A stretch of 64,000 nt of DNA from Paramoeba atlantica (Eukaryota; Protista; Discosea), in assembly GCA_977017575.1 (NCBI GenBank), contig CDRNVI010000058.1, forward strand, positions 135,003 through 199,002. Reading direction: 5' to 3'. Shown here piece after piece: positions 34,807 through 63,919 of this stretch; position 1 is the stretch's first letter; every line of letters starts with the position of its first letter. A model generated the notes under the pieces. It saw nothing but the letters and a program-made list of their open reading frames with translations. It was not told the origin of the DNA and ran no database searches. Both the position numbers and the translations under genes were made by a program.

Positions 34807-36118
34807 CTCCCCCTCTCATTAATTTTTAATAATATAAATTATAACAAAAATGAAAATTTATACTATCCCCCCCTATTTAATAGGGCTACGTGTCACCCCC
34901 CCCTATAATAGGGCCATTTTTGTCTGGAAGGCCAAAAAAGATTGGTAATAATAATAAATGCCGGTAAGGTGGAATCTCCCAGTTTTGTTCGGATTTCTGT
35001 TAATACCCCCTTGAAACCCTGAGTCCATTTTTTAGAAGACTCTGCATCTTGAAAATACGACGCTGCACGATGATCTTGTATGATGCGCTTGTTATGTTCT
35101 TTGTGAGGAACTTTGGCATGCACACCATCCGTCACCCCCCTCCACAAGAAATGCGCGCGGTGAAGTACACCATCAGCAGATACAAGTATTGTTGATGTAA
35201 ATCCGAGACGCGTCCCTGCAAGCTGTATTGGCTTTCCCTTTGATGCACGTACCCATGTCCATTCGCGGTTTGTTTCATCCAGCTTACAGAAAAATTCATC
35301 CATGTTAAATACGAGTTCTGGGAGAATGTGGGAATTTTATCTCATCATAAAAGGACAAACCAGCCTTCTTCACTGCAGGAGGGGAAACCCATGTCTCTGC
35401 CGACGCGGCGAGCGTGATTATGGCCCGGAGCGTTATCCATGATCACTGTTGCCGCTGGTTTACGCTTTAACCAGTTGTAGAAACCATTTCGTTTTGTCAT
35501 GGCAGAGAGAAACGTTTCATTAGTGACCGTCTCATTCTCCGCAAACTCATGAAAACAGTGAACCTTGGGAACCCCCCATTTTCTTCATCTACAATAGATT
35601 CTAACATTATTCGAAACTCTTCATTATCAATCGCATTCTTACGTATGTATTTTATACGTTCTAACCCTCCTGTCTCCCGGTGGCGTTTAACCCATCGAGA
35701 GACAGTTGCTTCACTGCATTTCATAAGAGCAGCAGTGTCTGTAATCGAACGTCCCTGGTTTTGTACCTCATGGACGCAAATTACACGTGTTTCATGAGTG
35801 ATTTGTTGCGTCGAGAGGGTGCGCCTCTGGCGGCGAAGTGTTTTCGGCATAAAAGATGTGTTAGAAAGAGTTAAGTGGTATTTTATTCATAGATTAATGC
35901 GCTAAAATGATAAAAAATGATAAAAATCCGATTTTTTGCAGAATTTTCGGGTAAAAAATTCAGTAAAATTTTATCATGACGTCATATCAGCTTCAGGAGC
36001 GGCAACAATGGTGCCAGTAGTCTTAAAATTTCGAGATCTGTTGAATGCCGAAGGAATTAGGTCAAAAGCTCGCGCGGTACAAATTTTAGACCCCCCACCT
36101 TTTTCGTGACCCCCCCTG
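34807..36118 (-). mobile_element. Nested degenerate Tc1-like and pogo-like transposase fragments
   Basis: HTH (ALMKCSEATVSRWVKRHRETG), VIMDNAPGH, then pogo-like ELVFNMDEF...FTSTILVSADG. Ends are a TIR like the 45890 family at ~36075-36118 and ta|ctccccctctcattaat at 34807. Confidence 0.7.
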
Positions 36119-36592
36119 TAAAGAAGTACTGCTCTATTTGCGACAGAGAGACGTTGTTCAGCGTTCGCTCCAATTCTTCCTGTCTGGATTGCTCTTCACG
36201 AGGTGATAGTATAACATTATTTTTAGAAGCCTGCCAACATTGTGCTGAAAATTGTGTCCCTGTTGGGAAGAATCTACAATGTATGCTCACAGTGCCATGG
36301 CGCGCAAAGTCCGGAGACATTTGCACCACCATTAGTGGCCAAACTAAGTGAACGTGGGCTTGACATTGATAGAGTCAAGCGCGTTTGTTGTTCTTATGTC
36401 GGGTGGAACATTTGTGGCTGCACCATGTCGTTCTCCCAGGTGGCGCATATAAATTTATTAAATTAAATTTATTATGCATCATAAAAAATTCTGCTAAGGC
36501 TGGGCCCCGCAAGACGTATCTTCGATCAGCCGAGGCAGTTGCTTTTTGGTTGGGACACGCTCTTCAAGGAAACAGTGCGCGAGATGGCGGAT

Positions 36593-37977
36593 TGTCAACA
36601 CCAACGCACCACTTTTTTTCCCAAAAAATAATTTTCTTGTCATTTCCAGTGCACCACTTTTTCTTAAAAACTGTATTCTCATTTCCAATGCACCATCAAT
36701 TATTTAAAGAAGAATTATTTTATAATATCCTTCGGATCTACACTACAAATGCGCCGTTATTCAAGACTCAGTCATTACGATCGTAATCGTATTCAATCAC
36801 TCTTTACATCTGGCGAGAGTCGGCGAAGCATAGCTCGCATAATTGGCAAAAGTCACAGCACTGTTTGTCGCGAGTTGGCGCGTAATGCAAGAAGGGGTCA
36901 GCGCTATGAGGGGACGAGGGCACAGCGCATTTCGAAAAGACGCCTCTCGTGTAAAAAGGTCAAGCCTCACAAGATACAAGGCCTTTTGGAAGAGGAAGTC
37001 AGCTCTCGACTTCAAAAGAAGCACAGCCCGGAACAGATTGCAAATACGATCCGTAGCTGTCGTACCGCCTCGACTTCTACCATATATCGCCATATTCGTC
37101 GCAACGCGTCCTTAGGCGGCAAGTTGTACACCCATTTGCGGATCCGGCGAAAGAGGCCATACCGTCGTCGCACCAGACCTGATCGCAGCGCGATTCCCAA
37201 CCGAACGCCACTTGAAAATCGACCAGAAATTGTTAATAAGCGTCGGCGCTACGGCGATTGGGAAGCAGACTTGGTCGAGGGTCGAGGACATACCGGATAT
37301 ATTCTTACCCTGTGCGAGCGTAAGAGTCGCTTCCTTGTTCTTCGCAAGTTGGAATCTAAGCACGCGAAGGGGGTAAGCAAACAAATTGTAGACGGGTTAA
37401 AGAATTACAAGGTTCAAACAATCACATACGACAACGGAACAGAATTCTGGCACCATGAAGAAGTAAACAAAAAATTAAAATGCAAGTCTTTCTTTTGCGC
37501 TCCATATCATTCGTGGGAGAAAGGGTCTGTGGAACATGCAAACGGTTTGATCCGACAATTCCATCAGAAAACCGAATCTTTTGAGAATTTGAACCAAAGT
37601 GAATTAAACAAAACAGCATTGGAATTGAACACTCGTCCTCGGAAATTATTAAATTATCGTTCTCCAATGGATTTTGTGAATGAACTGCGTAAGTAAAAGA
37701 AGCTAAGTAAGCAAAGGTACGTGAGAAAGCTTGTAAAGTTAGTCTGTTAGTGTTGGAAATTTAATGACATTAAATTTAAGCATTTTGTAAAGGTGAAGAA
37801 ATTCTTGTCTAATAAAGTTTCTTACTCAGATCTTACACTTGTATTACACTTTCTTTAAATACTCTGGATAAGTTTTTATGTTGAAAGGAAAAAGGAACGA
37901 TGTTCAACTATGGTGAGGCGCAGAAAAAAGGAATGACGGTCGACTATGGTGAAAAAAGTGGTGCGCTGGAGTTGACA
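36593..37977 (+). mobile_element. IS30-family insertion sequence, apparently intact
   Basis: Imperfect ~26-bp TIRs tgtcaacaccaacgcaccacttttt / aaaaagtggtgcgctggagttgaca, flanked by AT on both sides (2-bp TSD). Confidence 0.9.
36749..37696 (+). CDS. IS30-family transposase (DD33E)
   Basis: STVCRELARN, HSPEQIA, STIYRHI, RRYGDWEADLVEG, LCERKSRF, TITYDNGTEF, CAPYHSWEKGSVEHANGLIR, LNTRPRKLLNYRSP. Confidence 0.96.
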   Translation: MRRYSRLSHYDRNRIQSLFTSGESRRSIARIIGKSHSTVCRELARNARRGQRYEGTRAQRISKRRLSCKKVKPHKIQGLLEEEVSSRLQKKHSPEQIANTIRSCRTASTSTIYRHIRRNASLGGKLYTHLRIRRKRPYRRRTRPDRSAIPNRTPLENRPEIVNKRRRYGDWEADLVEGRGHTGYILTLCERKSRFLVLRKLESKHAKGVSKQIVDGLKNYKVQTITYDNGTEFWHHEEVNKKLKCKSFFCAPYHSWEKGSVEHANGLIRQFHQKTESFENLNQSELNKTALELNTRPRKLLNYRSPMDFVNELRK

Positions 37978-38488
37978 ATGGGGTGGTGCACTGGAGTTGA
38001 ACATCCGGGGATCTTTCAAAAACATTGCGTCGAATTTGGGAGTCCTATCGAGGACGTGAATCTGAGCTTCGAAAGGAGCAGCGCGATGCCCTTGTAAAGA
38101 AAGTTGAAGAACGCTTGGTTGATAAAATTGATGATTTTAAGATTGTTCGAGAAAAAGTTCACCGCGCTCAATCTTTGATCGAAGATTCTTCACTATCTGT
38201 CGAAGAACTTTTTCAACATCTTAAAGATAAGAAAGTTTTGCGAGAAGAAAAAGAGGTTCTTCTGCGGCACGTTAAGCGTCCCCAACCCCAACCACTTGCA
38301 GAAGGAAAGAAGGAAGAAAAGAAAGGTCGGACACGTATTATTAAGGGAGCACTAAGTCAGAATACATTGAAGTTCTCAGTTTCCTTGAATTAAGTGAAGT
38401 CTTTAAGGTGACGAAAGTTTTATGGAGTTGACCTTATACACGCATGTTCTGTGTTTGTAGCCTAAGTATGTAGATCTGGTAGGAAAGA

Positions 38489-40576: not shown

Positions 40577-40860
40577 GAAGAGGGAGCCGGGAACTGGCAC
40601 GCGGACTTCGAAATGATACGTACAGTGCCAGGCGCGCTGAACGAGCAGCGAAGAAGTCCATGCTGAAACGCCAGCCGCGCCCATGCATGATTAAAGGAGA
40701 GATTAAAGACAAAGTCGTGTCTCTCCTACGCAGGTGCTTTAGCCCCCAGCAAATTACAGTAGTTTTGCGCAAAGAAGATGGTATTAAAGTATCCCGAACG
40801 TCAATATACGGGTTTATTAAGCGGGATGATGGTCAACATGGGAACTTGGAGAGTTTGAAA
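40577..40860 (+). pseudogene. IS30-family transposase N-terminal fragment
   Basis: SRELARG..Y.ARRA, LLRRCFSPQQITVVLRKEDGIKVSRTSIYGFI aligns with the 48632 copy. Confidence 0.8.
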
Positions 40861-42373: not shown

Positions 42374-45318
42374 CCGTATACCCCCCCCCCCCGTAATAGA
42401 ATGGGTTTTGGGCCAAAATGGCCAAATCTCTGTTACTGGGGGGTGTATGCTTTTTTGGGGGAGTAACTTCAGGACACTGGTCCGGACATGGAATTTTGTC
42501 ACCATGGTACTCCCCCTCTCATTAATAATTATAATTATAATCTATAAACCTTTTTAGTTTATAATTATAATTATAGTTTATAATTATTAATGAGATTCGA
42601 TAAGTGATTTTTTCTTACTATGGACTTCAATTTCTTGATTTTCGAGACACTACGTTCAACTTGGAAGCAATTTTTAGTGCAAAGTATGTGGTACAGGTGT
42701 CTTTGTAGATAAAAAATGATGAATTTGAGGTTTATAATTATAAAAGTGAGACTCAGAATTATAATCTCATTAAATTTCTATAAACGATCCCTTTAATGAT
42801 TTTTGGAGGTTTATAATTATTAATGAGAGGGGGAGTACTATTTTTTCGAAGAAAAAAAAATTCTTTTTCACTCAGTTGTATTCCTTATTAATGATTTTCT
42901 ACTATCAATAGTAAAAAATTTTCTTGTCAAATTTTCCTGAGTTGCATGGTGCAAACTATTTGCTCCTGCTGGAAGGGTAGACCCCCAGCCCCTTCGCCTC
43001 TTCTCCATCCCGTCTACTTCTCTCCCTCCCCTTCTTTGCCTTCGCCTTCCGTCTCTTCTTCTCTATCTCCATCCTCTTGTCCCGTCTCCTCCTCTCTCTC
43101 CCCTTCTTCACCTTCGCCTTCCGTCTTTCCTCCTTTATGTTCTTTGCCTTCGCCTTCCGTCTCTCCCTCTCTTTCCCCCCTTGTCCCAGACTCCTCTTCT
43201 CTCTCCCCTTCTGCACCCCCTGTCCCAGACCCCTCTTCTCTCTCCCCTTCCTCTCCCCTCCCGTCTCACGCTCCACGCCATACGTTGGATGCGTACTGGG
43301 CTAAGAGATCACGGAGTATGGAGAGGGAGGTGATCCCAAGGGCTAGTGGGCCCGTAAGTAGTTCAGTATTGGGTTTTGGAGCGAAAGTATTGTGTGTTCA
43401 AGAGGGGATTGTTAGGAGAGGGGGGCATGTTGAAGAACATATAAAACGCAGGATGTATTTTCATACCAGTTTATCAGTCAAATATTCCTGGTTTTGATTT
43501 CCCTTGTTTATCTACCTCTGTAGAAGAGAAAATGAAAAAAAGACAGGAAGATGAAGAAAGCGTTATTGTGGACATAGAGGCAACAACACAAGTTGCTTCT
43601 TCTGAATCAATAATCGCGAGGAAACAATATACTTATAATGAAAAATTAGATAAAGTGAGACGATACATGGCAGCCCCCTGGGGGCAAAGAGATAAGCTTG
43701 TGAAGGCAAGTGGGGTAAAGTACGGAACAACGGCAAGTTGGATGGCAAATTATGAAGATATAAAGAAGGCTGTACAACGAGGATTTGGCACCCTTACAAA
43801 GTTAATGCCACTCGTAAAATACAAGGAGCTTTTTGAACAAGCCTACAAATACTATTGTACCGCACGTGAAATGTTTTCTGCAGTTCCTATGTATCACATA
43901 CGATTGTACTGCATGCAAAACAGCGAAGAATTTTCAAAATTAAAAGTAAAAGATCAGTATTTTAGGATCGGGGAATTTGAAATGCATTACGGGTTATCTG
44001 CTAGGCGTCGTACAGGCTTAACCCAACTTTTACCTTCTAATTTTCAAGAGAGACATGAGGCTCATTTTCGAGTTGTAGAAAATTCTTTAAAAGACGAGTG
44101 TTTCCCTGAATTTATTATTCTTTTGGATGAGACGGGTGTTTTATGGAACCCTGCTCCTACAACAACTTTAGCTCCAAAGGGTTCGAAATGTGTTCCTATT
44201 AGAATAAAATACGAGAAAAAACAGTCAACTTGTCTTTTGTGGGTTTCAGAATGTATTAAAAGAAATGAAAAAGGTTACGAAATATTCAATGCAAAATATG
44301 AGAATCCTTATATTATTTTTGAAGGAAAAAAGGAGTGCCAAAGATCTAATTCAGTGGAGAGTAAGGTAAGGAAGGCTGTTGAACAGAAGCCTACGTACGC
44401 AGAGGTTAATCAAACGGGGTTTAAAATTCGTTGAAAAAATTCCCAATTGTTATAACAAGAGGGCGTGGCTTATTATGGACAGATTTTCAGCCCACCGCAC
44501 AGAAACAGTTGAAAACGCAATAAGTAATAAGGGATATAAAATTTTTTATATTCCTCCTGGTTGTACTTCTATTCTGCAATTTCAGGATGTTTATGTGAAC
44601 AAACCATTCAAAGATCGTATTAGAAACTTTTACACCAAGCATTGTATTGAGAAAAATAATAATGTAACGAGAGAGCTTGTTGTTCAATGGGTAGTGGACG
44701 CCCAAGCATCATTAAAATTACAAATGATAGAAAGTGGAATAAAAAAGCTTGTATTAAGAAATTTTGTAGGAGTTGGAGAAGAAACAAATGTCAACCAAGG
44801 GACAGACGCGGATCTTCCGACGGAAGTGCAAGTGGCGCTTTTAGAAGATGAGCCGCAGGATCTGTCCTTGGTTGCCGTTGCAATATCTTTTGCCGAGGCA
44901 GTCCAGCCTGAAGAACATGGCTATGAAAATATAGAAAGTGATTAGCTTGCATAACATTATCGACTTCTATTTTAACTGTCATGACAGTTTTTTAGATGTC
45001 GTATCAACAAACTTCAAGTAACTTTAGTAACTTAGCTTTAGTCTCTCTTTCATCTTCTTTTAGTCTAAGATCTCTTCTAATCATGAGTAAATGCTTTCGT
45101 TTGAGCCACCACCACCCAACCCGTCCAGCGACCCATGACGCCCAGCCTCCCCTGTCACCCCCCCCCCCAACCCCTCACCAAACCACCCCCGACGCCAGCC
45201 TCCCCGGACCGCCCAACCTCTCACCCAGCCATCCCCGACGCCAACCCCCCCAGCCACCCAGCCTTCCGAGCCGAACCTCTGTTACTGGGGGGGGGGGTGT
45301 CTTACTGGGGGTATACGG
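42374..45318 (+). mobile_element. pogo-superfamily DNA transposon (DD35D) with TA TSD; transposase 43532-44945 frameshifted once
   Basis: TA|ccgtataccccc...gtaata / ttactgggggtatacgg|TA; LLDETG, LIMDRFSAH, IPPGCTSILQFQDVYVNKPFK. Confidence 0.88.
42510..42835. mobile_element. 326-bp MITE with TA TSD inserted in the pogo element
   Basis: TA|ctccccctctcattaataattata...tataattattaatgagagggggag|TA; same TIR at 34807 and ~40318-40335. Confidence 0.88.
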
Positions 45319-45364
45319 TAGTACCGTCTCTTCATAGTAAAATTTGGCCTTCCAAGCTCTTTGA

Positions 45365-45778
45365 GGAGACCCATTTCAAGCCTGCCCCGAACATAAGGCC
45401 GCCTTCCGCGGATCCGTAGGCACTTGTGAAACTTCCCCCCATTGTCTTTGTCTCGACAAACAAATCGATAGATTGTGGAAGTGGATGGTGAACCTTGTGA
45501 GCCAACAAGTGTATATCCTATTAGCAACCTGCTCCGGGCTGTGAAGCTTTCGGAGACAGGTCTTTACACTTTTTTCAAGACTGGCTCTAATTTGACGTGG
45601 TCTGGTCCCTTTATTGACCAGTCGTCTCTTGGCAACACGATGGGCACGGCTAGAACGGTATTGCCCACCTCTTTTCCTGTTGCGTGCCAGCTCACGACAT
45701 ACCGTACTTGGGGACTATTATGTAGAAATTAACCTTTTGTTGCGCTGAGTATGACAATTTGTTGCACTGACATTGACA
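45365..45778 (-). pseudogene. IS30-family element 5' fragment with tandem TIR-like ends
   Basis: Manual translation gives STVCRELARNRKRGGQY, LHSPEQVAN, TSTIYRF, LRIRGRRPY; upstream tgtcaatgtcagtgcaac and tgtcatactcagcgcaac. Confidence 0.82.
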
Positions 45779-45889: not shown

Positions 45890-47461
45890 CAGGGGTGAAA
45901 ACTTCCATCTGGGGGGGGGTCTAAAATTTGTAAAATTTGCTCAATTTTGTAAAATAATAGCGCATTGGAGAGCTCTCGCAGAGTTGTATGTCTTTGGCGT
46001 ATTCGGAACGCTCGACTTGAAAGATTTAATCTGATGACAAAAAAATAATTTTTTTTCTTGTGAAAATATGGCAATTTTTTGTTTTTCCCCATTTTATGCC
46101 TCAAAAGCGAGTTCGCTCAAGGACTTCCCGTGGTGTTTTGAGCGCACGCTCCTATGCCTCACCAGGGAAGATTAAGGAAAGTCACAGGATGCTTCTTGTG
46201 GCGGACTTTGAGAAAACAGAGTCTTATTCCCGGACTGCCCAAAATTTTGGTGTCCACGAGGGAACTGTGAAACTCTGGGTGGAAAGATTTAATTGCACTG
46301 GCGACGTGGCCAGTCCATCCCCTACGCGTCAACCTAGGGTCACCACCTCTGATCTTATGAAAGTATCTTTAAAGCTTATTGATGACGCTTATCGTGACCT
46401 TCCTTATGGTATCTCCACTTGGAGCGAGCTCTGGAGAGAGGTAAAGCGACGTGGCTTCACATGTTCAATAACATCCCTAAGGAACATGTTGAAAAACTCA
46501 AAAGAAAAAATTGTGCTCAGAACAGCTTTAAAGACCCTTTTCTTATCTAATAATCATAAGGAGCGCAGAGTGCAATTTGCCACTGAAGTGCTACAGTGGA
46601 GCGACGCTGCGCTGGAAAATATTATTTTCTGCGACGAAAAAAAATTTACGTGCAAAAGATCCACCCGACCCACGTACCTTTGCCGAAAATCTGACCCCCC
46701 CAAAGAACAAACAGGGGAATTAGAACCCTAGCATGGTGGAGAAGGTATTATGGTTTGGATGGGGGTGAGCTTAAAGCATGGGTTTCATTTACACGTATTT
46801 CCTACCCATGATTCTCAAGGAAACAAAGTAACTGTAAAGGGACAAAATTTTTATGAAGCCATGAAAAAAAAGGGGGGTCTGTTCCAATATTTAAGGAGAC
46901 ATCGGGCCACAATAGTGATGGACAATTGCCCGGCACATAATAAGGCTCGTGCCGCGGCCCAAGAAAAGGGTTATTCTTGGCTCCGATGGCCAGCACGATC
47001 CCCTGATCTAAACCCCATAGAAAATCTTTGGTCAATAATGGACGGGACAAAGGACCGAATTCAACCCAAAAATCAACAACAATTACTCTCCGCAATTCAT
47101 GATTCCTATGATAAACTTAAGACAGAACAAATATCCAAATTTGAGAATACGCTAAAAAGCTTCAGAAAGCGTTGTAGAATCATTGTAGAAAAGAACGGTG
47201 CACATTGCGGATACTAACAGGGGTTACTAACAATCTTTTTGGGGGGAAAAACGTTATTTTTTAACTTTTTTGTATCATTTTTCAAGTGACAATTCGAGTT
47301 TTTGACCTATTCGGCATTTGTAGTTCCACTTTGATATGTTAAAAGCTACCAGTACGAAGACATACAACTCTGCGAGAGCTCTCGAATGCGCTATTATTTT
47401 ACAAAATTGAAAAGTTTTTACAAATTTTAGACCCCCCCCCAGATGGAAGTTTTCACCCCTG
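45890..47461 (+). mobile_element. Tc1-like transposon (DD32E), ~110-bp TIRs, TA TSD; transposase 46060-47217 with one TAG
   Basis: TA|caggggtgaaaacttccatctgggggggg...ccagatggaagttttcacccctg|TA; IIFCDEK, VMDNCPAH, WPARSPDLNPIENLW. Confidence 0.92.
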
Positions 47462-48631: not shown

Positions 48632-49330
48632 ATGTCGAACTTCAATAAAGTGAAAACGCGTCTTGATTCGGATGATCGAGCGATGATAGAACTGTTGCAT
48701 AACCAACAAGAGTTTTCTCAAGAGGAGATAGCGGAGAAGGTAAAAGCCTCTCAATCTACAATCAGCCGGGAGTTTGCCCGGGGCACCTTCAAAGACGTTT
48801 ATCACGCGAAGCGCGCCCATCTTGCGTGCAGTAAAGCGATGTCAAAGCGCAAGGGAAAGGCTTACAAAATCGAAGGTGACGTGGAGGAAAAGGTGATCCG
48901 TCTATTGGAACGACGATTTAGCTCGCCGCAGATCAGCGTGGTCTTACGTAAAGAAGATGACGTTAAGGTGTCGCGTGTCGCAGTGTACGGTTTTATCAGG
49001 CGTGATGAATCCCTCGGGGGAACACTGTATAAGTGCCTGCGTCGAGGCGGTGGTCGAGGCCGTCGCCTGCGCGGCAAAAGCCGTTTTAAGATCCCGAATC
49101 GCACAGACATTAGCGAAAGGCCCAATGTTATCAACACGCGGGGAAGATTTGGTGACTGGGAGTGCGGCCTAATAGAGGGGTCAACGCACAGTGGGTTCTT
49201 CCTAAGTTTGCTGGAACGGAAAAGCAGGTTTGGTACACTAAAGCTACTGCGCACGAAGAAGAATGAGGTCGTTGCAGAGGCTATTGGTAGCGCCCTGGAA
49301 CACTATCTTGTTCATACGATTACGGGCTTG
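48632..49330 (+). pseudogene. IS30-family transposase, 3'-truncated after first catalytic region
   Basis: SQSTISREFARG, RGRFGDWECGLIEG, LLERKSRF, VHTIT then breaks into palindromic sequence. Confidence 0.9.
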
Positions 49331-49703
49331 AGGGCACGTTCGTTGAATCTTCAACGAACTGAGCGCCCGTTCGTTGAACATTCAACGAACGTGTCCCCTG
49401 GGGGTGCAATTTTGTTTTCCCACAAAAAAAATTTATTTCCCCAAAAAATATATTTCCCCTCCCACAGGAATGGCTGCGACACCTAGTTTAGGGGTCTAGA
49501 GGTCCAACTGTGAGGGAAGCCCACGTCTGCGAGCAAGGCCCAACTGTGAGCGAAGCCCACGTCTGCGAGCAAGGCCCAACTGTGAGCGTAGCCCTGGGAT
49601 ATAATTATTTTTTTCTGGGGACCCGCGCGCTGGAGCGCGCGGGTCGCGCACTGAGAACCTGTGTCTGCCACTTCCTCAGGATTGACCAGAGGCAATAATT
49701 ACT

Positions 49704-51112: not shown

Positions 51113-51144
51113 AACGATAAAGATACAGTTTCTGTACTTTGTTG
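51113..51144 (+). other. Spliced-leader (mini-exon) relic
   Basis: aacgataaagatacagtttctgtactttgttg resembles the conserved 3' part of euglenozoan SL exons (GATACAGTTTCTGTACT.TATTG); not followed by the GT of the SL intron. Confidence 0.8.
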
Positions 51145-51188
51145 ATTTCTTTTTTTAATCTAGTCTTCTCTTGGGGCTCAGTTCTCCT

Positions 51189-51917
51189 ATGACACAGGTG
51201 AAAAATCCTCAGACCCACGTAGGTACGAACGAAGACTCTCATTCATTCCATCAGAATATTGACGTCAGCGAAGGTACTCTCAGTGAAAGCGCTCTCATCG
51301 ACGAAGAGCGTTCCCACTGTCCCGGCAGTTGGGACCAATTCGATGGCAACAAGCACCTGATCTCCACTGCGAGCACTTACGACGAACAATTTTACACTAC
51401 CCCGATCCCGAAGAATATTCCCAAGGAATGGATGGAGCGCGTACGCCACATCACACAGGAGAGGGAAACTCCGGACACAGGACACGCAGAGGCCGAAGAT
51501 GAGGAAACACAACACTGTGCGGTGAGAAGGCAGAAAATAACGCAAGAAGACGCACTCGCACCCAAGGCCGCCGATAAAAGCTATACTCAAAGCCGCAGTG
51601 AAAGACGCTCTTTCCCGCCAACTGCAAAACACTTCACCATCGAAAGGGGTCACCAAAACGGACTCGCGTCCGTCAAGACGAACACCTTGGACATACCATT
51701 CTTCACCCCGGCACGCTGTAAACAAGACCACCTCCGCGGAAAAAACACAAAGTGGAGAAGAGTATCGGGAATGCCCAGCGGTGGGATGCTCTTGGCGAAG
51801 TCCGCCGCACGGAGGGTCGTGACAAGCATTCTACAATCACGTCGCATACGACACACCCGAGCGACGAAAGCCATCCCCCAGGGACCCAAACGCATCACTC
51901 CGAACTTCCCTCACTGA
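51189..51917 (+). pseudogene. ORF containing an ataxin-2/PBP1 LsmAD-like segment fused to retrotransposon sequence
   Basis: WDQFDGNKHLISTASTYDEQFYTT (~51330-51400) matches the WDQF..N..L...STYDE..YTT signature of LsmAD. Confidence 0.65.
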
Positions 51918-54890
51918 CCACGTGCAAGGACGTGCCCCCTCGCTGCCGCCAACTCTGGGGAGAAATCCTTACAAACGCAGCTAAAAACGCAGTCACCGAG
52001 AACTCTACAGCCGCATGGACCCTACTCGCTATGCTTCCGAAGTGCTTACTACCAGCCCCACACCGAGGAGGTCGCAAGAACCACACAACTTACTCATCAT
52101 ACGTCCAGAAGTGCATGAACCGATGGCTTGCACAAGACTAAATGTCTCCCTATGGAGACTTTATGTCTCCCTATGGAACGAAGCAGTAGACAACACACAG
52201 AAGAAACAATCCGCTGCTTCTACAGCCGTCCACGACGAGGAGGAAAAAGCCGCTATTCGAGCAGAGTTGCTAGTTCGACGAGGTGAGTACTCTAGGGGTA
52301 TGGCTGCACTTACCGCGGATTCTATGGCGCCCGACGACGAAGACACCTTCCGTAAGCTTCAAAGCAAACACCCTTGCCGTCATCCAGACAGTGACATCAT
52401 CGACTATGCGCCTCCGTCCACAGAGCCTTTAGTAGTGCAGGAACCCGCGGTAGAAAAAACGATCAAAAGCTTTCACAGGGGTTCCTCGGCAGGAACAATG
52501 GGTTTGCGACCCGAGCACTCACAAGCTGCACTTCTGGCGCGCGTAGACAACACGGTGAAACCTCTTAACGCGCTTACACATCTTGTGAACCACCTGTTAG
52601 CCGGGAAAGCACCCCTAGAGGTACAGCCATACTTCGTGGGAGCCAGACTTTGCGCCTTGGAAAAGGGTGAAAACGATGTCCGACCTATAGCAGCGGGAGA
52701 AACAATACGTCGATTGGTGAGCAAAGCGGCGTGCAATGCAGTGAAGAGCAAAGCTAGCGAAATATTCAAGGGGTTACAGTTCGGAGTTGCGACGCCGGCA
52801 GGAGCTGAACGAATAATTCACACTTGCCGGCATGCCATGGCAATCCACACAGACAACCCCGACCTGGTACTGTGCAAAGTCGACCTGAGCAACGCCTTCA
52901 ACAACGTAAGCAGATCAACTTTCTTGAAACTCGTAAGCGATCACTTCCCGGAATTGCTTCCATGGGCAATCTGGTGCTATACGACAACCAGTGTTTTGAC
53001 ACCCTATTCTCGGATGAAGGCGTTCAACAGGGAGACCCCCTAGGGCCGCTTTTCTTTTCACTGGTCTCTCTGGAGCTTGCGAACGAGATCTATCTCCAGA
53101 CCGACCTCCACTTGCAATTATGATACCTGGACGATGGAATTCTCATTGGCAGGGCTGAAGATGTCAGGAACTCGCTGGATACGATTGCGAGGGTGGGTCC
53201 GCGTTGGGGGCTTTATTTGAACGTGGCAAAGTGCGAAATTATCACCCCCCCCCCCCTGCTTCGGCTAACGTTGTGGCCATGTTCCCAGACATACCCGACT
53301 CCAAAATAAACGTCTGCAGCAATCTTAGCGTCCTAGGAAGCCCAATTGGGTCCCCTGAATACTGCGCTGAATACCTGATGACTCATGTTGTTGAGCCGGC
53401 GGAAATGGCACTGAAAACAATAACTACGATCAGGCACCCACAGGTAGCCATGGTGCTAATTCGACAGTGTGCGGGTTTCTGCAAAATGGTGTATGCGTTA
53501 CGAACCACGCCACCGCAATCACTTATGCACCTCTGCGAGCGTTTTGATGACTTCCTCATGCACACGGTCGAATCAATGTCCCTTACCTCCTCCCGCACGC
53601 TCCAAAATTCAACGCATGAAACGACATGGAGGTTTCGGGCTAAAATCGGCGACCCTACATGCATCCTCCGCTTACGTCTCTTCCGTAGCTTTCGCAGCGG
53701 CGACGGACTCTTGGGATCCTTCTGAAGTCGAGGGCTTCCTGCTCGCGATTGAAGACGTGAACTCCAAAGTGGGTGTTAACCTCCTCGACTCAACAGGGCA
53801 CGTACGTTCTATCCCGCGCCACAAGTGTGAAGAAGTCTCACCCCAGTCCCGTTCTTCCAAAAGGCCTCGTCAGCCTGACATCGATTATTCTTTCGAGTCT
53901 ACGATTCTCCCTTCCCTTCCACGCGAGCGCGCATTGACTTCTCCCGCAGACTTTCTTTCCACTTCAAACCCCCTACACGCAGCGGACTGCGTTGATGCGG
54001 AGCCGCCGGACTGGGAAAAGAAGAGCGTCCCCCGTCAAAAAGACATAAGTTACGCGATCTCCGCCGCGGAGTTTTCTTGTGCGTATGAAAACGCCGACGC
54101 GAGGACTCGTACACGCTGGACTTCCCAATGCGGTAAAGGTGCGAGAAGTTGAGCGTTCGTGACTCCGTCAAAAGACACTGGCCACGCTCTTAACCCAACA
54201 GAATTCCGCATCTTATCCCGCTGGTGGTTGGGTGTGTCGGTCTACGGGGAGGAAGGTACATGTCCCAAGGGGAACTGCACCCTCCCACTGGACAAGGATG
54301 GGGATCATGCCCTCACATGCAAGCACGGGGGCGGTATCCTAAGCCGACACAACTCTTTGGCGGACCAGTTCGCTGATACCTGCAGCAACGCATATTTAGC
54401 TCCCCAACGGGAAAAAAGCCTTAGGAATAGGGGCCCCGGTGGTGCCTTGACTAGACCTGGGGATGTCTTCCTGCCGAGCCTTTTCCTCGGAAAGCCCATG
54501 GTGCTTGACTTCGCGGTCACTCACGCCCAGCAACCTAAATACACGGACACAGTCCGAAATGCTAGCTGGGTGGCCGCGGGGTCCTTCGCCGAGCACTACT
54601 CCTCGGATCAGAAAGCCCGACCGCGCCGTGAAGCTGAAAACGCCGGAAGCGATTTCACAGCGATGGTTGTCGAGAGCTACGGCTCTTGGAGCACCAGCGC
54701 CTGAGCAGTACTCCGGAAAGTTGGCGAACGCAGAGCGAAAGCATCCAACGGCGTTCTGTCCGACGACGCGTCTACGCTCCGACTCATGACGGATATGAAC
54801 GTCACACTGATGCGTTCCCAAGCACGCATGATGATCACGCGTCTGCCGGTAGTGGATTCCCCAGCTCCGTTAATCGAACAATAGCTCGAT
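51750..54890 (+). mobile_element. Near-full-length CRE/SLACS-clade non-LTR retrotransposon (RT + zinc knuckle + REL endonuclease), degenerate
   Basis: AGTMGLRPEH, DVRPIAAGE, QFGVATPAG, DLSNAFN, GVQQGDPLGP, *YLDDG, CKHGGGILSRHN, RPGDV, LDFAVTH, VVESYGSW; several frameshifts; (TTA)-rich tract at ~55180-55245. Confidence 0.92.
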
Positions 54891-60794: not shown

Positions 60795-62518
60795 CAGTGG
60801 TTTCAGTTGATCTTGCCCCCCCCTCGGAATTTTGATTTTTTTTATCCATTTTTGCTCATCTTTGCAGCATTGGACAGATCTCGTTCCCCTAGCGAAGAGC
60901 TTTGCCGCTTTTTTTTCATAGAGACCCTCTGGTGCCCCCTGGGTCCGAAAAACACTGTTTTTTTTGACGTTTTCTGTGTACACAACCATTTTTTGTCACA
61001 TTTTCCCGATTTTTTGTACATTTTGAACATGTAAGTACGAGTAATAGTGTTCTAAATTGATAATTTGAAAGCTCTATGTCTAGTACCATCCCTATCGCCT
61101 AATTTAATATAGTCAACAACTCTACATTATGCAGACCAGACCCTCTAACCCCAAACAGGGGGAGTACGTACAGGGATGGAATGACAAAAGAGAAGACAAT
61201 CCCCCAATATCCCACAAAGGAACCGTGGCATTACCTCTTTGCGAGAGAAAAGAAATAATAAAGCAACACAAAAAGGGATTAAGCATACATAAATTATCTA
61301 ATAATTTCGGACGTGACCGTCGCACCATAAGAAGAATTGTTAACCTGTGGAAGGAAGGAGAAGATCTTACACCCCAAAAATCCCCAGGAAAAAAATCATC
61401 AAGGCGGTTTAAGGACCTTGTAAAAAAAATTGTGGATGATGAAAACGAAACGTACGATGGTTGCTTAACTTATACTTGGATACACGAGCAAGTGCTGAAT
61501 ATGGGGTATAAATGTTCGTTAAACAAAATAAGAACTATTTTGAAAAATATTGATTACGGTAGATGGGATAAGTCGCCGAACTGTGACCTATCTGAGGAAC
61601 ACAAGTCGCAGCGTTTGAGATTAGCAAACGAATTGCTTACATGGCCTAAAGAAGATTTAAACAAAATCATTTGGACCGATGAAAAGTTGTTTACCTGTGC
61701 GGTTCATGGGTCTCAGTTTTTCATTGGACCTAAAGGGTGCCAAAGAAAACCTCGCTGCAGAAACCGTAGGTGGTATGGGGGGAAGGGGGTAATGGCTTGG
61801 ATGGGTATTAGTGTAGAACACGGATTTTTCTTGCACGTGTTTGAACCCATTTATGAAAACGCGCACAAGGTCACTGGGGGAGTGATCCTTGACTCCTTTC
61901 AGAAGCCTAATGGGTTTTTACATTATCTCAAAGACCACGTTGACAATGTGACTGTGCAAATGGATAATGCTACCACCCATAACTTGGCAAAAGGTGAATT
62001 GATTAATTATCGTATTAAACAATTGTCTTGGCCAGCGAATTCGCCTGATTTAAATCCAATATAAAATGTTTGGAAACAAATGAACGGTATCATAAAGAAA
62101 AAAATTAAGCCCCACAAACATGCTACCCTCGCCGATGCTATTAAAAAAGCTTTTCAGATTCTAAAACGTCCTCAAGAAAAACGTAAAGTGTGCAACACAA
62201 TTGATCCAGTCCCTAATAGACTTCAAAAAGTGTTGCAAAACAATGGAGGCCATTCCGGATACTAGTTCTTTTCCTTTAGAGTTAACTTTTGGACATAAAA
62301 TCCGTTTTTCGTTTCATTTTTGATATGGTAAAAAATATCATTTTTTATTATTTTGGTCAACTTTCGGGTCACCCAAGGGGCACCAGGGGGTCTCTATGAA
62401 AAAAAGGCGGCAAAGCTCTTCGCTAGGGGAACGAGATCTGTCCAATGCTGCAAAGATGAGCAAATGGATAAAAAAAATCAAAATTCCGAGGGGGGGGCAA
62501 GATCAACTGAAACCACTG
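60795..62518 (+). mobile_element. Tc1-like transposon (DD32E), ~155-bp TIRs, TA TSD; transposase 61129-62265 with TAA at the catalytic Glu
   Basis: TA|cagtggtttcagttgatc...gatcaactgaaaccactg|TA; IIWTDEK, QMDNATTH, WPANSPDLNPI*NVW. Confidence 0.93.
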
Positions 62519-63689: not shown

Positions 63690-63762
63690 GCCTCGATAGC
63701 TCAGTTGGGAGAGCGTTAGACTGAAGATCTAAAGGTCCCTGGTTCGATCCCGGGTCGAGGCA
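63690..63762 (+). tRNA. tRNA-Phe (GAA)
   Basis: gcctcga/tcgaggc acceptor stem, ttaga-ctGAAga-tctaa anticodon arm, ggttcgatcc T arm, TTTT terminator. Confidence 0.97.
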
Positions 63763-63835
63763 TTTTCCGTTCCATGTCACTTTGGGGTGATCGAAAAAGT
63801 AAAGTGTAGAACTTCAATGACCAGTTGTTGTGTTG

Positions 63836-63919
63836 CCGACCGTAGCTCAATTGGTAGAGCATGTGACTGTAGAACGCGCAGATATCACAGGGTCGCTGGT
63901 TCGATTCCGGCCGGTCGGA
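63836..63919 (+). tRNA. tRNA-Tyr (GTA) with 11-nt intron (63873-63883)
   Basis: ccgaccg/cggtcgg acceptor, tgtga-ctGTAg[aacgcgcagat]a-tcaca, T arm, T-run terminator. Confidence 0.95.

Follow-up and report, generated by a model that had tools for sequence, protein, structure and literature searches.

Does an element of IS30, a family otherwise prokaryotic, that is found among eukaryotic genes belong to the genome in which it lies, and if so where did it come from and does it still move? We looked at one such locus in a window of 64,000 nucleotides, by which we mean the whole stretch of DNA analysed, corresponding to contig ctg3922l of assembly ENA ERZ24900291, where an intact insertion sequence acquired horizontally from bacteria and still mobile had been predicted. 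Our preferred reading, which we consider highly likely, is that the locus is an autonomous IS30-family DNA transposon resident in the nucleus of a kinetoplastid-type protist, following an old bacterial entry after which the lineage diversified and kept transposing. With moderate confidence we further suggest that it represents an undescribed eukaryotic IS30-derived group, for which we use the name IS30EU, present so far in one kinetoplastid-type lineage, comprising at least two deep clades and still mobile.

Host chromosome and transposase

Genes in the left half of the window have no introns and follow one another on the same strand; they encode a choline-transporter-like protein, a tRNA methyltransferase, a protein kinase, ribosomal S13 and a topoisomerase I C-terminal subunit. 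A topoisomerase IB encoded by two genes is a kinetoplastid trait. In the window the subunit stands alone as a 369-aa protein whose sole domain is the C-terminal one of topoisomerase I, and among solved structures this protein matches the small subunit of Leishmania topoisomerase I (2b9s_B) best. A spliced-leader-like 19-mer at 51126-51144 lies one mismatch from what we take to be the conserved end of the kinetoplastid spliced leader, against a chance expectation of 0.02, and within 51126-53043 it is placed directly upstream of ORFs with a weak LsmAD match and a reverse-transcriptase match, as in SL-targeted retroelements. No Rfam model matched an SL RNA in the window, Rfam giving two tRNAs only; two adjacent tRNA genes are found at 63690-63919 (+). 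The right half is rich in eukaryotic transposons, with Tc1/mariner-type ORFs, a reverse transcriptase and three IS30 remnants. The Tc1/mariner-type HTH and DDE_3 ORFs (61129-62064, 46060-46731 and 35497-35850) represent a second DNA-transposon class in a kinetoplastid-type genome.

Related elements elsewhere in the assembly are found in similar company. Some IS30 copies adjoin Piwi/PAZ, and on a 122-kb contig a 275-aa ORF (L085) is located between PIG-P and HSP90 within a plus-strand run of DEAH helicase, S17, kinesin and PIG-P followed by HSP90, which indicates that IS30 elements also land in polycistronic units. No clear terminal repeats were found around the L085 ORF. Whereas IS30 hosts are by definition of the family prokaryotic, the genes flanking the element are eukaryotic and kinetoplastid-type, and by gene content alone we identify the host as a kinetoplastid-type eukaryote; a protein search with the topoisomerase small subunit returned just 2 weak matches, and the Atlas no informative ones. 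The original prediction of an element residing among eukaryotic transposons in a kinetoplastid-like genome is in agreement with these data, given the Tc1/mariner-type HTH and DDE_3 and reverse transcriptase ORFs around it, the separate topoisomerase IB small subunit, the spliced-leader relic and the kinesin and HSP90 genes beside a related copy.

The 315-aa ORF of the element scored 245.3 bits against the IS30 transposase model NCBIfam NF033563 (cutoff 80), covering model positions 1-267 of 267, versus 58 bits against the IS481 model and 37 bits against the IS21 model. Pfam places HTH_38 at residues 3-46 and the rve integrase core at 167-255 and matched no Tc1 or Merlin domain in the protein; nor is the transposase closest to any of the superfamily models that have IS relatives (Tc1/mariner-IS630, Merlin-IS1595, IS481EU and IS3EU). 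The catalytic residues are D174, D228 and E262, with the 33 residues between D228 and E262 that constitute the IS30 spacing, DD(33)E, and in an alignment with 18 relatives the three columns are invariant or nearly so. All of the nearest Atlas clusters of the transposase are bacterial IS30. By sequence the assignment to IS30 is unambiguous, and the full-length 315-aa DD33E transposase that had been claimed is confirmed by the model score, the two domains and the catalytic triad. The transposase shares a conserved basic stretch (residues 131-146) with its bacterial homologues, and this is thus not a eukaryote-specific addition. GC and GC3 of the transposase (0.47 and 0.46) match those of host genes; as the bacterial relatives span a GC of 0.44-0.59, composition does not discriminate as to origin.

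Ends, copies and an empty site

Three near copies of the element are present on other contigs of the same assembly, and between the four contigs the flanks are unrelated, with similarity to the window beginning at 36586 and stopping at 38009. The sequence common to the four copies, together with the joint of an empty site, defines a mobile unit of 1424 bp on the plus strand in which the transposase ORF is preceded by a 163-bp leader and followed by a 313-bp trailer (Table 1).

Table 1 Features of the IS30-family element, its near copies and related IS30 sequences. Positions are those of the window unless another contig or copy is named
Feature	Position	Strand	Evidence or detail
Left target-site duplication GAT	36583..36585	.	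read directly; empty-site joint 36582->38010
Complete IS30-family element, 1424 bp	36586..38009	+	limits shared with L001, L003 and L089
Left terminal inverted repeat GGCGGATTGTCAAC...	36586..36612	+	inverted-repeat pairs I1 and I3
Two IRL-like direct repeats in leader	36637-36662, 36676-36701	+	direct-repeat family D1
Transposase ORF, 315 aa	36749..37696	+	HTH_38 N-terminus and DDE core
Two 31-nt direct repeats in trailer	37886-37916, 37922-37952	+	direct-repeat family D3, 84% identity
Inner right IR-like box	37953..37979	+	pairs I1 and I2; inside sequence common to all copies
True right terminal inverted repeat ...GTTGAACATCCGGG	37983..38009	+	pair I3; shared sequence stops at 38009 in four copies
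Right target-site duplication GAT	38010..38012	.	read directly; empty-site joint
Copy L001 (ctg3222l)	9838-11262 of L001		98.1% nt identity; ORF intact, 98% aa identity; duplication CCT
Copy L003 (ctg3503l)	4389-5811 of L003		97.4% nt identity; ORF broken by two 1-bp indels; duplication TTT
Copy L089 (ctg3938l)			~98% nt identity; 606-bp internal deletion corresponding to 37034-37639; duplication GTT
Doubled right box of diverged copy L086	8587-8609, 8615-8639 of L086
Short IS30 transposase remnant	40585-40848	+
IS30 transposase remnant, frameshifted	45318-45714	-	54-62% identical to clade A proteins
IS30-type ORF, 284 aa, clade B	48632-49483	+	40% aa identical to studied element
IS30-type ORF, 275 aa, clade B (L085)	8001-8828 of L085 (ctg3986l)

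The terminal arms (36588-36612 and 37983-38007) are 25 nt long and 80% complementary, within the ~20-30 bp inverted repeats of the IS30 family, and the target duplication is 3 bp in all four copies, within the family's range of 2-3 bp. The two ends are built differently, the right one from two tandem IR-like boxes and the left one from a single terminal box and two internal ones, the latter being 81% and 65% identical to the terminal box. The diverged clade-A copy L086, with a protein 55% identical, shares the start GGTGGATTGTCAA with the element and also has a doubled right box, so that the end architecture is conserved over this distance; the doubled right box and the internal boxes are probably functional. 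A 17-mer of the left terminus, allowing up to 3 mismatches, matched only the element itself, and there are thus no MITE-like relatives within the window.

These limits differ from those originally predicted. Inverted repeats had been claimed at both ends, and the computed inverted-repeat pairs are indeed present there. The proposed termini at 36593 and 37977 (TG...CA), however, reflect an inner pairing: TGTCAAC... at 36593 and ...GTTGACA at 37977 form a real pair (I1) but one internal to the mobile unit, as the three other copies share 36586-38009 and diverge directly outside it. The right terminus had been misplaced because the inner of the two tandem right boxes was taken as the end. Likewise the supposed 2-bp AT duplication is, from the comparison of copies and the empty site, a 3-bp duplication of GAT. 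All four duplications (GAT, CCT, TTT and GTT) have T as their last letter, which may reflect a target preference, four sites being too few to establish one.

Evidence for movement comes from the search for further copies and empty sites, which returned the three copies with unrelated flanks and, in run X1, a contig that joins 36582 to 38010. The 1427 letters that this contig skips equal the element and one GAT, 3 letters at the joint fit either side, and the empty site accordingly carries a single GAT. It is a single contig of depth 3 whose shorter side is just 30 letters, and could be paralogous rather than allelic. Both the filled and the empty site are present in run X1, and contigs of three separate runs extend into the element junctions. 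Past transposition in this genome is nearly certain. The runs also carry variant letters that match none of the four copies, from which it follows that additional copies exist. All copies derive from one assembly and one study, which limits their independence.

A number of other rearrangements were seen around the locus. A contig of run X2 skips 216 bp within 36614-36831, that is the leader and first codons, and represents another internally deleted copy in the genome. Another X2 contig joins 35389 to 38901, skipping 3511 bp including the IS30 element, either because a larger unit has itself inserted or because a repeat links both sides. Just upstream of the element, the ~130 bp at 35970-36103 have a word depth 10-15 times that of the surrounding sequence in each of the three DNA runs. 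L002 contains an 84% match to this stretch, which looks like a very high-copy short repeat.

Relatives, origin and alternative explanations

The closest protein outside ERZ24900291 among 5.8 billion protein clusters has 49% identity, and in an exhaustive HMMER search of 1.84 billion representatives the top full-length match outside the assembly stood at 43%. Across 185,579 bacterial and archaeal species genomes the best full-length match, from Verrucomicrobiales, reached 46%, with bacterial genome matches in general at 41-46% and mostly from aquatic Verrucomicrobiales and Akkermansiaceae MAGs. A near-identical copy in a bacterium, which would have spoken against nuclear residence, was not found in these searches, the best outside protein being at 49% and bacterial and archaeal genomes at or below 46%.

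Trees were built from 145 rows and then from a careful version of 59 rows. The proteins of this genome form two clades, A and B, each with 100/99 support and with members from ERZ24900291 only. Clade A holds the studied element and its near copy together with P0004 and P0194 (55-58% aa identity), and clade B holds the 284-aa ORF of the window with P0130, P0214 and P0273. Following this ORF there is a palindrome with 28-nt arms, 93% complementary, at 49332-49396. Clades A and B stand in a trichotomy with a mostly Verrucomicrobiota clade C (89/88). Forcing A and B into one clade lowers the log-likelihood by 1.55 units (AU p 0.41), so that a single origin is neither established nor rejected. Clade A is deeply divergent and contains no bacterial sequence, which agrees better with long residence and diversification in the host than with recent transfer.

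The ends are consistent with a bacterial origin. A Verrucomicrobiae relative present in three identical copies of 1214 bp (L018-L020) starts with GGTGGATTC and is flanked by the 3-bp duplications CTG, ATA and GTT, and the protist element has thus retained the end motif of its bacterial kin as well as the length of their duplications. The start GG(C/T)GGATT is common to the element, the bacterial relatives L018-L020 and L030 and the diverged copy L086. Of the horizontal acquisition originally proposed, the bacterial origin stands, with phylogeny placing the host-only clades A and B beside a mostly Verrucomicrobiota clade; the acquisition is not recent, given the 49% identity of the closest outside protein and the two deep host-only clades.

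Several other explanations need to be weighed against this reading. An artefact in which the assembler joined an IS30 element of a culture bacterium to eukaryotic DNA has in its favour that the assembly is filed among ENA metagenome-type assemblies, that protists of such kind are usually grown with bacteria and that IS30 is otherwise prokaryotic. We nevertheless reject it as having a negligible probability, since four copies on four contigs have non-bacterial DNA on both sides and perfect 3-bp duplications, contigs from three runs enter both junctions, run X1 contains an exact empty site, no bacterial protein is more than 49% identical and a related copy lies between kinesin and HSP90 genes. 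A recent single transfer from a bacterium, either prey or symbiont, followed by a short burst would be compatible with subfamily copies that are 97-98% alike, with two intact ORFs and with ends that still resemble those of bacterial relatives. Such a history appears very unlikely as neither the 5.8 billion protein clusters nor the 1.84 billion representatives contained anything closer than 49% aa identity, the element's own clade includes copies from this genome at just 55-58% identity, a second host-only clade exists and the leader is without a plus-strand promoter of sigma-70 type.

The diverged copies could instead stem from several independent transfers out of related unsampled bacteria and not from diversification in the host. 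The trees do not show clades A and B to be sisters, placing both in the trichotomy with bacterial clade C, and the clade-B copy of the window is, at 40% aa, as distant from the element as bacterial ones. As A and B hold only proteins of this assembly, their union is not rejected by the AU test and the members of clade A have the unusual doubled right-end box in common, we consider this unlikely. Somewhat unlikely, finally, is a fossil family that transposed formerly and is now dead, its open frame surviving only through the youth of the copies. The 2-3% divergence among copies, the frameshifts of L003, the internal deletion of L089 and the lack of any transcript in the RNA-labelled run X5, which contains none of the stretch, all point that way, and are countered by a pN/pS of 0.16 between the two intact copies, by the empty site held alongside the filled one in X1 and by an element to flank depth ratio that differs between runs (~2.3x in X1 versus ~4.2x in X2, a crude measure).

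Selection, expression and comparison with known systems

Two of the four copies retain the full ORF, and these differ at 9 synonymous and 5 non-synonymous codons. Under neutrality ~11 of the 14 changes would be expected to be non-synonymous (binomial p 0.0009), and variable sites make up ~3.3% of coding positions versus ~5.5% of the leader and trailer. The codon comparison indicates that the intact ORF is under purifying selection. With 2-3% divergence between copies, one of them frameshifted and one carrying the 606-bp deletion, the last jumps need not be recent. No contig joining back on itself, as expected for an IR-IR junction or circle, was present among the assembled contigs, which drop rare forms. 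We find the retained mobility of the element plausible and put the chances of present-day activity at roughly even.

Expression of the transposase can be considered in the light of host biology. Kinetoplastid genes need no promoter of their own, being transcribed by read-through with addition of a spliced leader at an AG behind a pyrimidine tract. No sigma-70-like promoter was found on the plus strand of the leader. The D1 repeats of the leader contain pyrimidine tracts followed by AG, and a candidate trans-splice signal, a pyrimidine run and then AG at 36647-36648, falls within these IR-like repeats. Transcripts of the gene would then arise by read-through polycistronic transcription, with the spliced leader presumably added at AGs behind the pyrimidine tracts of the leader.

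Under our preferred reading an IS30 lineage would be an old arrival from bacteria in the host line, where it diversified while continuing to transpose. IS30-family biochemistry proceeds through an IR-IR junction, either a circle or a dimer, as the transposition intermediate. By analogy with that biochemistry the transposase may bind the repeated boxes at both ends, the two ends would be joined into a reactive IR-IR junction or circle by the IS30-type route, and this form would insert with a 3-bp stagger. For IS30 of E. coli, transposition in zebrafish has been reported (Szabo et al. 2003, cited in PMC2831304), which implies that the enzyme needs no bacterial cofactor. Persistence of the protist lineage would agree with this experiment in suggesting that the chemistry of IS30 transposases can be maintained in chromatin when bacterial host factors are absent.

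Compared with bacterial IS30 from aquatic Verrucomicrobiota MAGs (L018-L020), the element has the same transposase family, domain order, DD(33)E triad and single ORF, the same 3-bp target duplication and the GG(C/T)GGATT terminal motif. It differs in its eukaryotic host and in an amino acid identity of just 41-46%, is longer (1424 vs 1214 bp), carries repeated IR-like boxes in its leader and trailer with a doubled right end, and its leader is free of a sigma-70-like promoter on the plus strand. The family is thus ordinary and the host unusual, with the lineage found so far only in this organism.

Eukaryotic DNA transposons akin to a single prokaryotic IS family are known. IS481EU/Banshee of parabasalids is the third such 'ISxEU' group after ISL2EU and IS3EU and more have been predicted, IS30 being unmentioned among the IS-to-eukaryote links of that paper (Kojima and Bao 2023, PMC10045372). 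Like the element described here, IS481EU is confined to one protist lineage, but it belongs to another family (our protein scores 58 bits on IS481 vs 245 on IS30) and its duplications measure ~4, 15 or 25 bp as opposed to a fixed 3 bp. When all major IS groups were searched for in 430 eukaryote genomes IS607 alone was found (Gilbert and Cordaux 2013, PMC3673617), so that IS30 would be a new case. IS607-like elements resemble it as prokaryotic insertion sequences that reached eukaryotes (protists and fungi) by horizontal transfer with some copies intact, and differ in using a serine recombinase. The literature we searched, which covers few subscription journals, holds no description of IS30 in any eukaryote, kinetoplastids and other protists included; the original statement that no recognised eukaryotic group derives from IS30 accords with this.

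If correct, IS30EU would be the first IS30-derived transposon group known in eukaryotes, and a resident, diversified and apparently mobile protist lineage of this kind would connect the mobile DNA of bacteria and eukaryotes in a new way. It would also be a natural example of a bacterial copy-out/paste-in transposase that has adapted to polycistronic transcription and trans-splicing, and thereby a system in which to ask how a gene of bacterial origin comes to be expressed in a genome without gene-specific promoters. A native kinetoplastid DNA transposon with defined ends is in addition a possible source of genetic tools.

Within kinetoplastids the closest precedent is Merlin, reported from Bodo saltans and Perkinsela as the first DNA transposon of the group (Lopes et al. 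2021, PMC8101967). Merlin is likewise an IS-type relative (IS1595/IS1016) of non-trypanosomatid kinetoplastids; its copies were described as without terminal repeats or duplications and judged inactive, whereas the IS30 copies have both and an empty site, and IS30EU, if real, would be the first kinetoplastid DNA transposon to show signs of having moved recently. The present assembly also contains a Merlin-type sequence, a 319-aa ORF with an IS1595 DDE domain at 2677-3636 of L086, ~4 kb from the IS30 copy.
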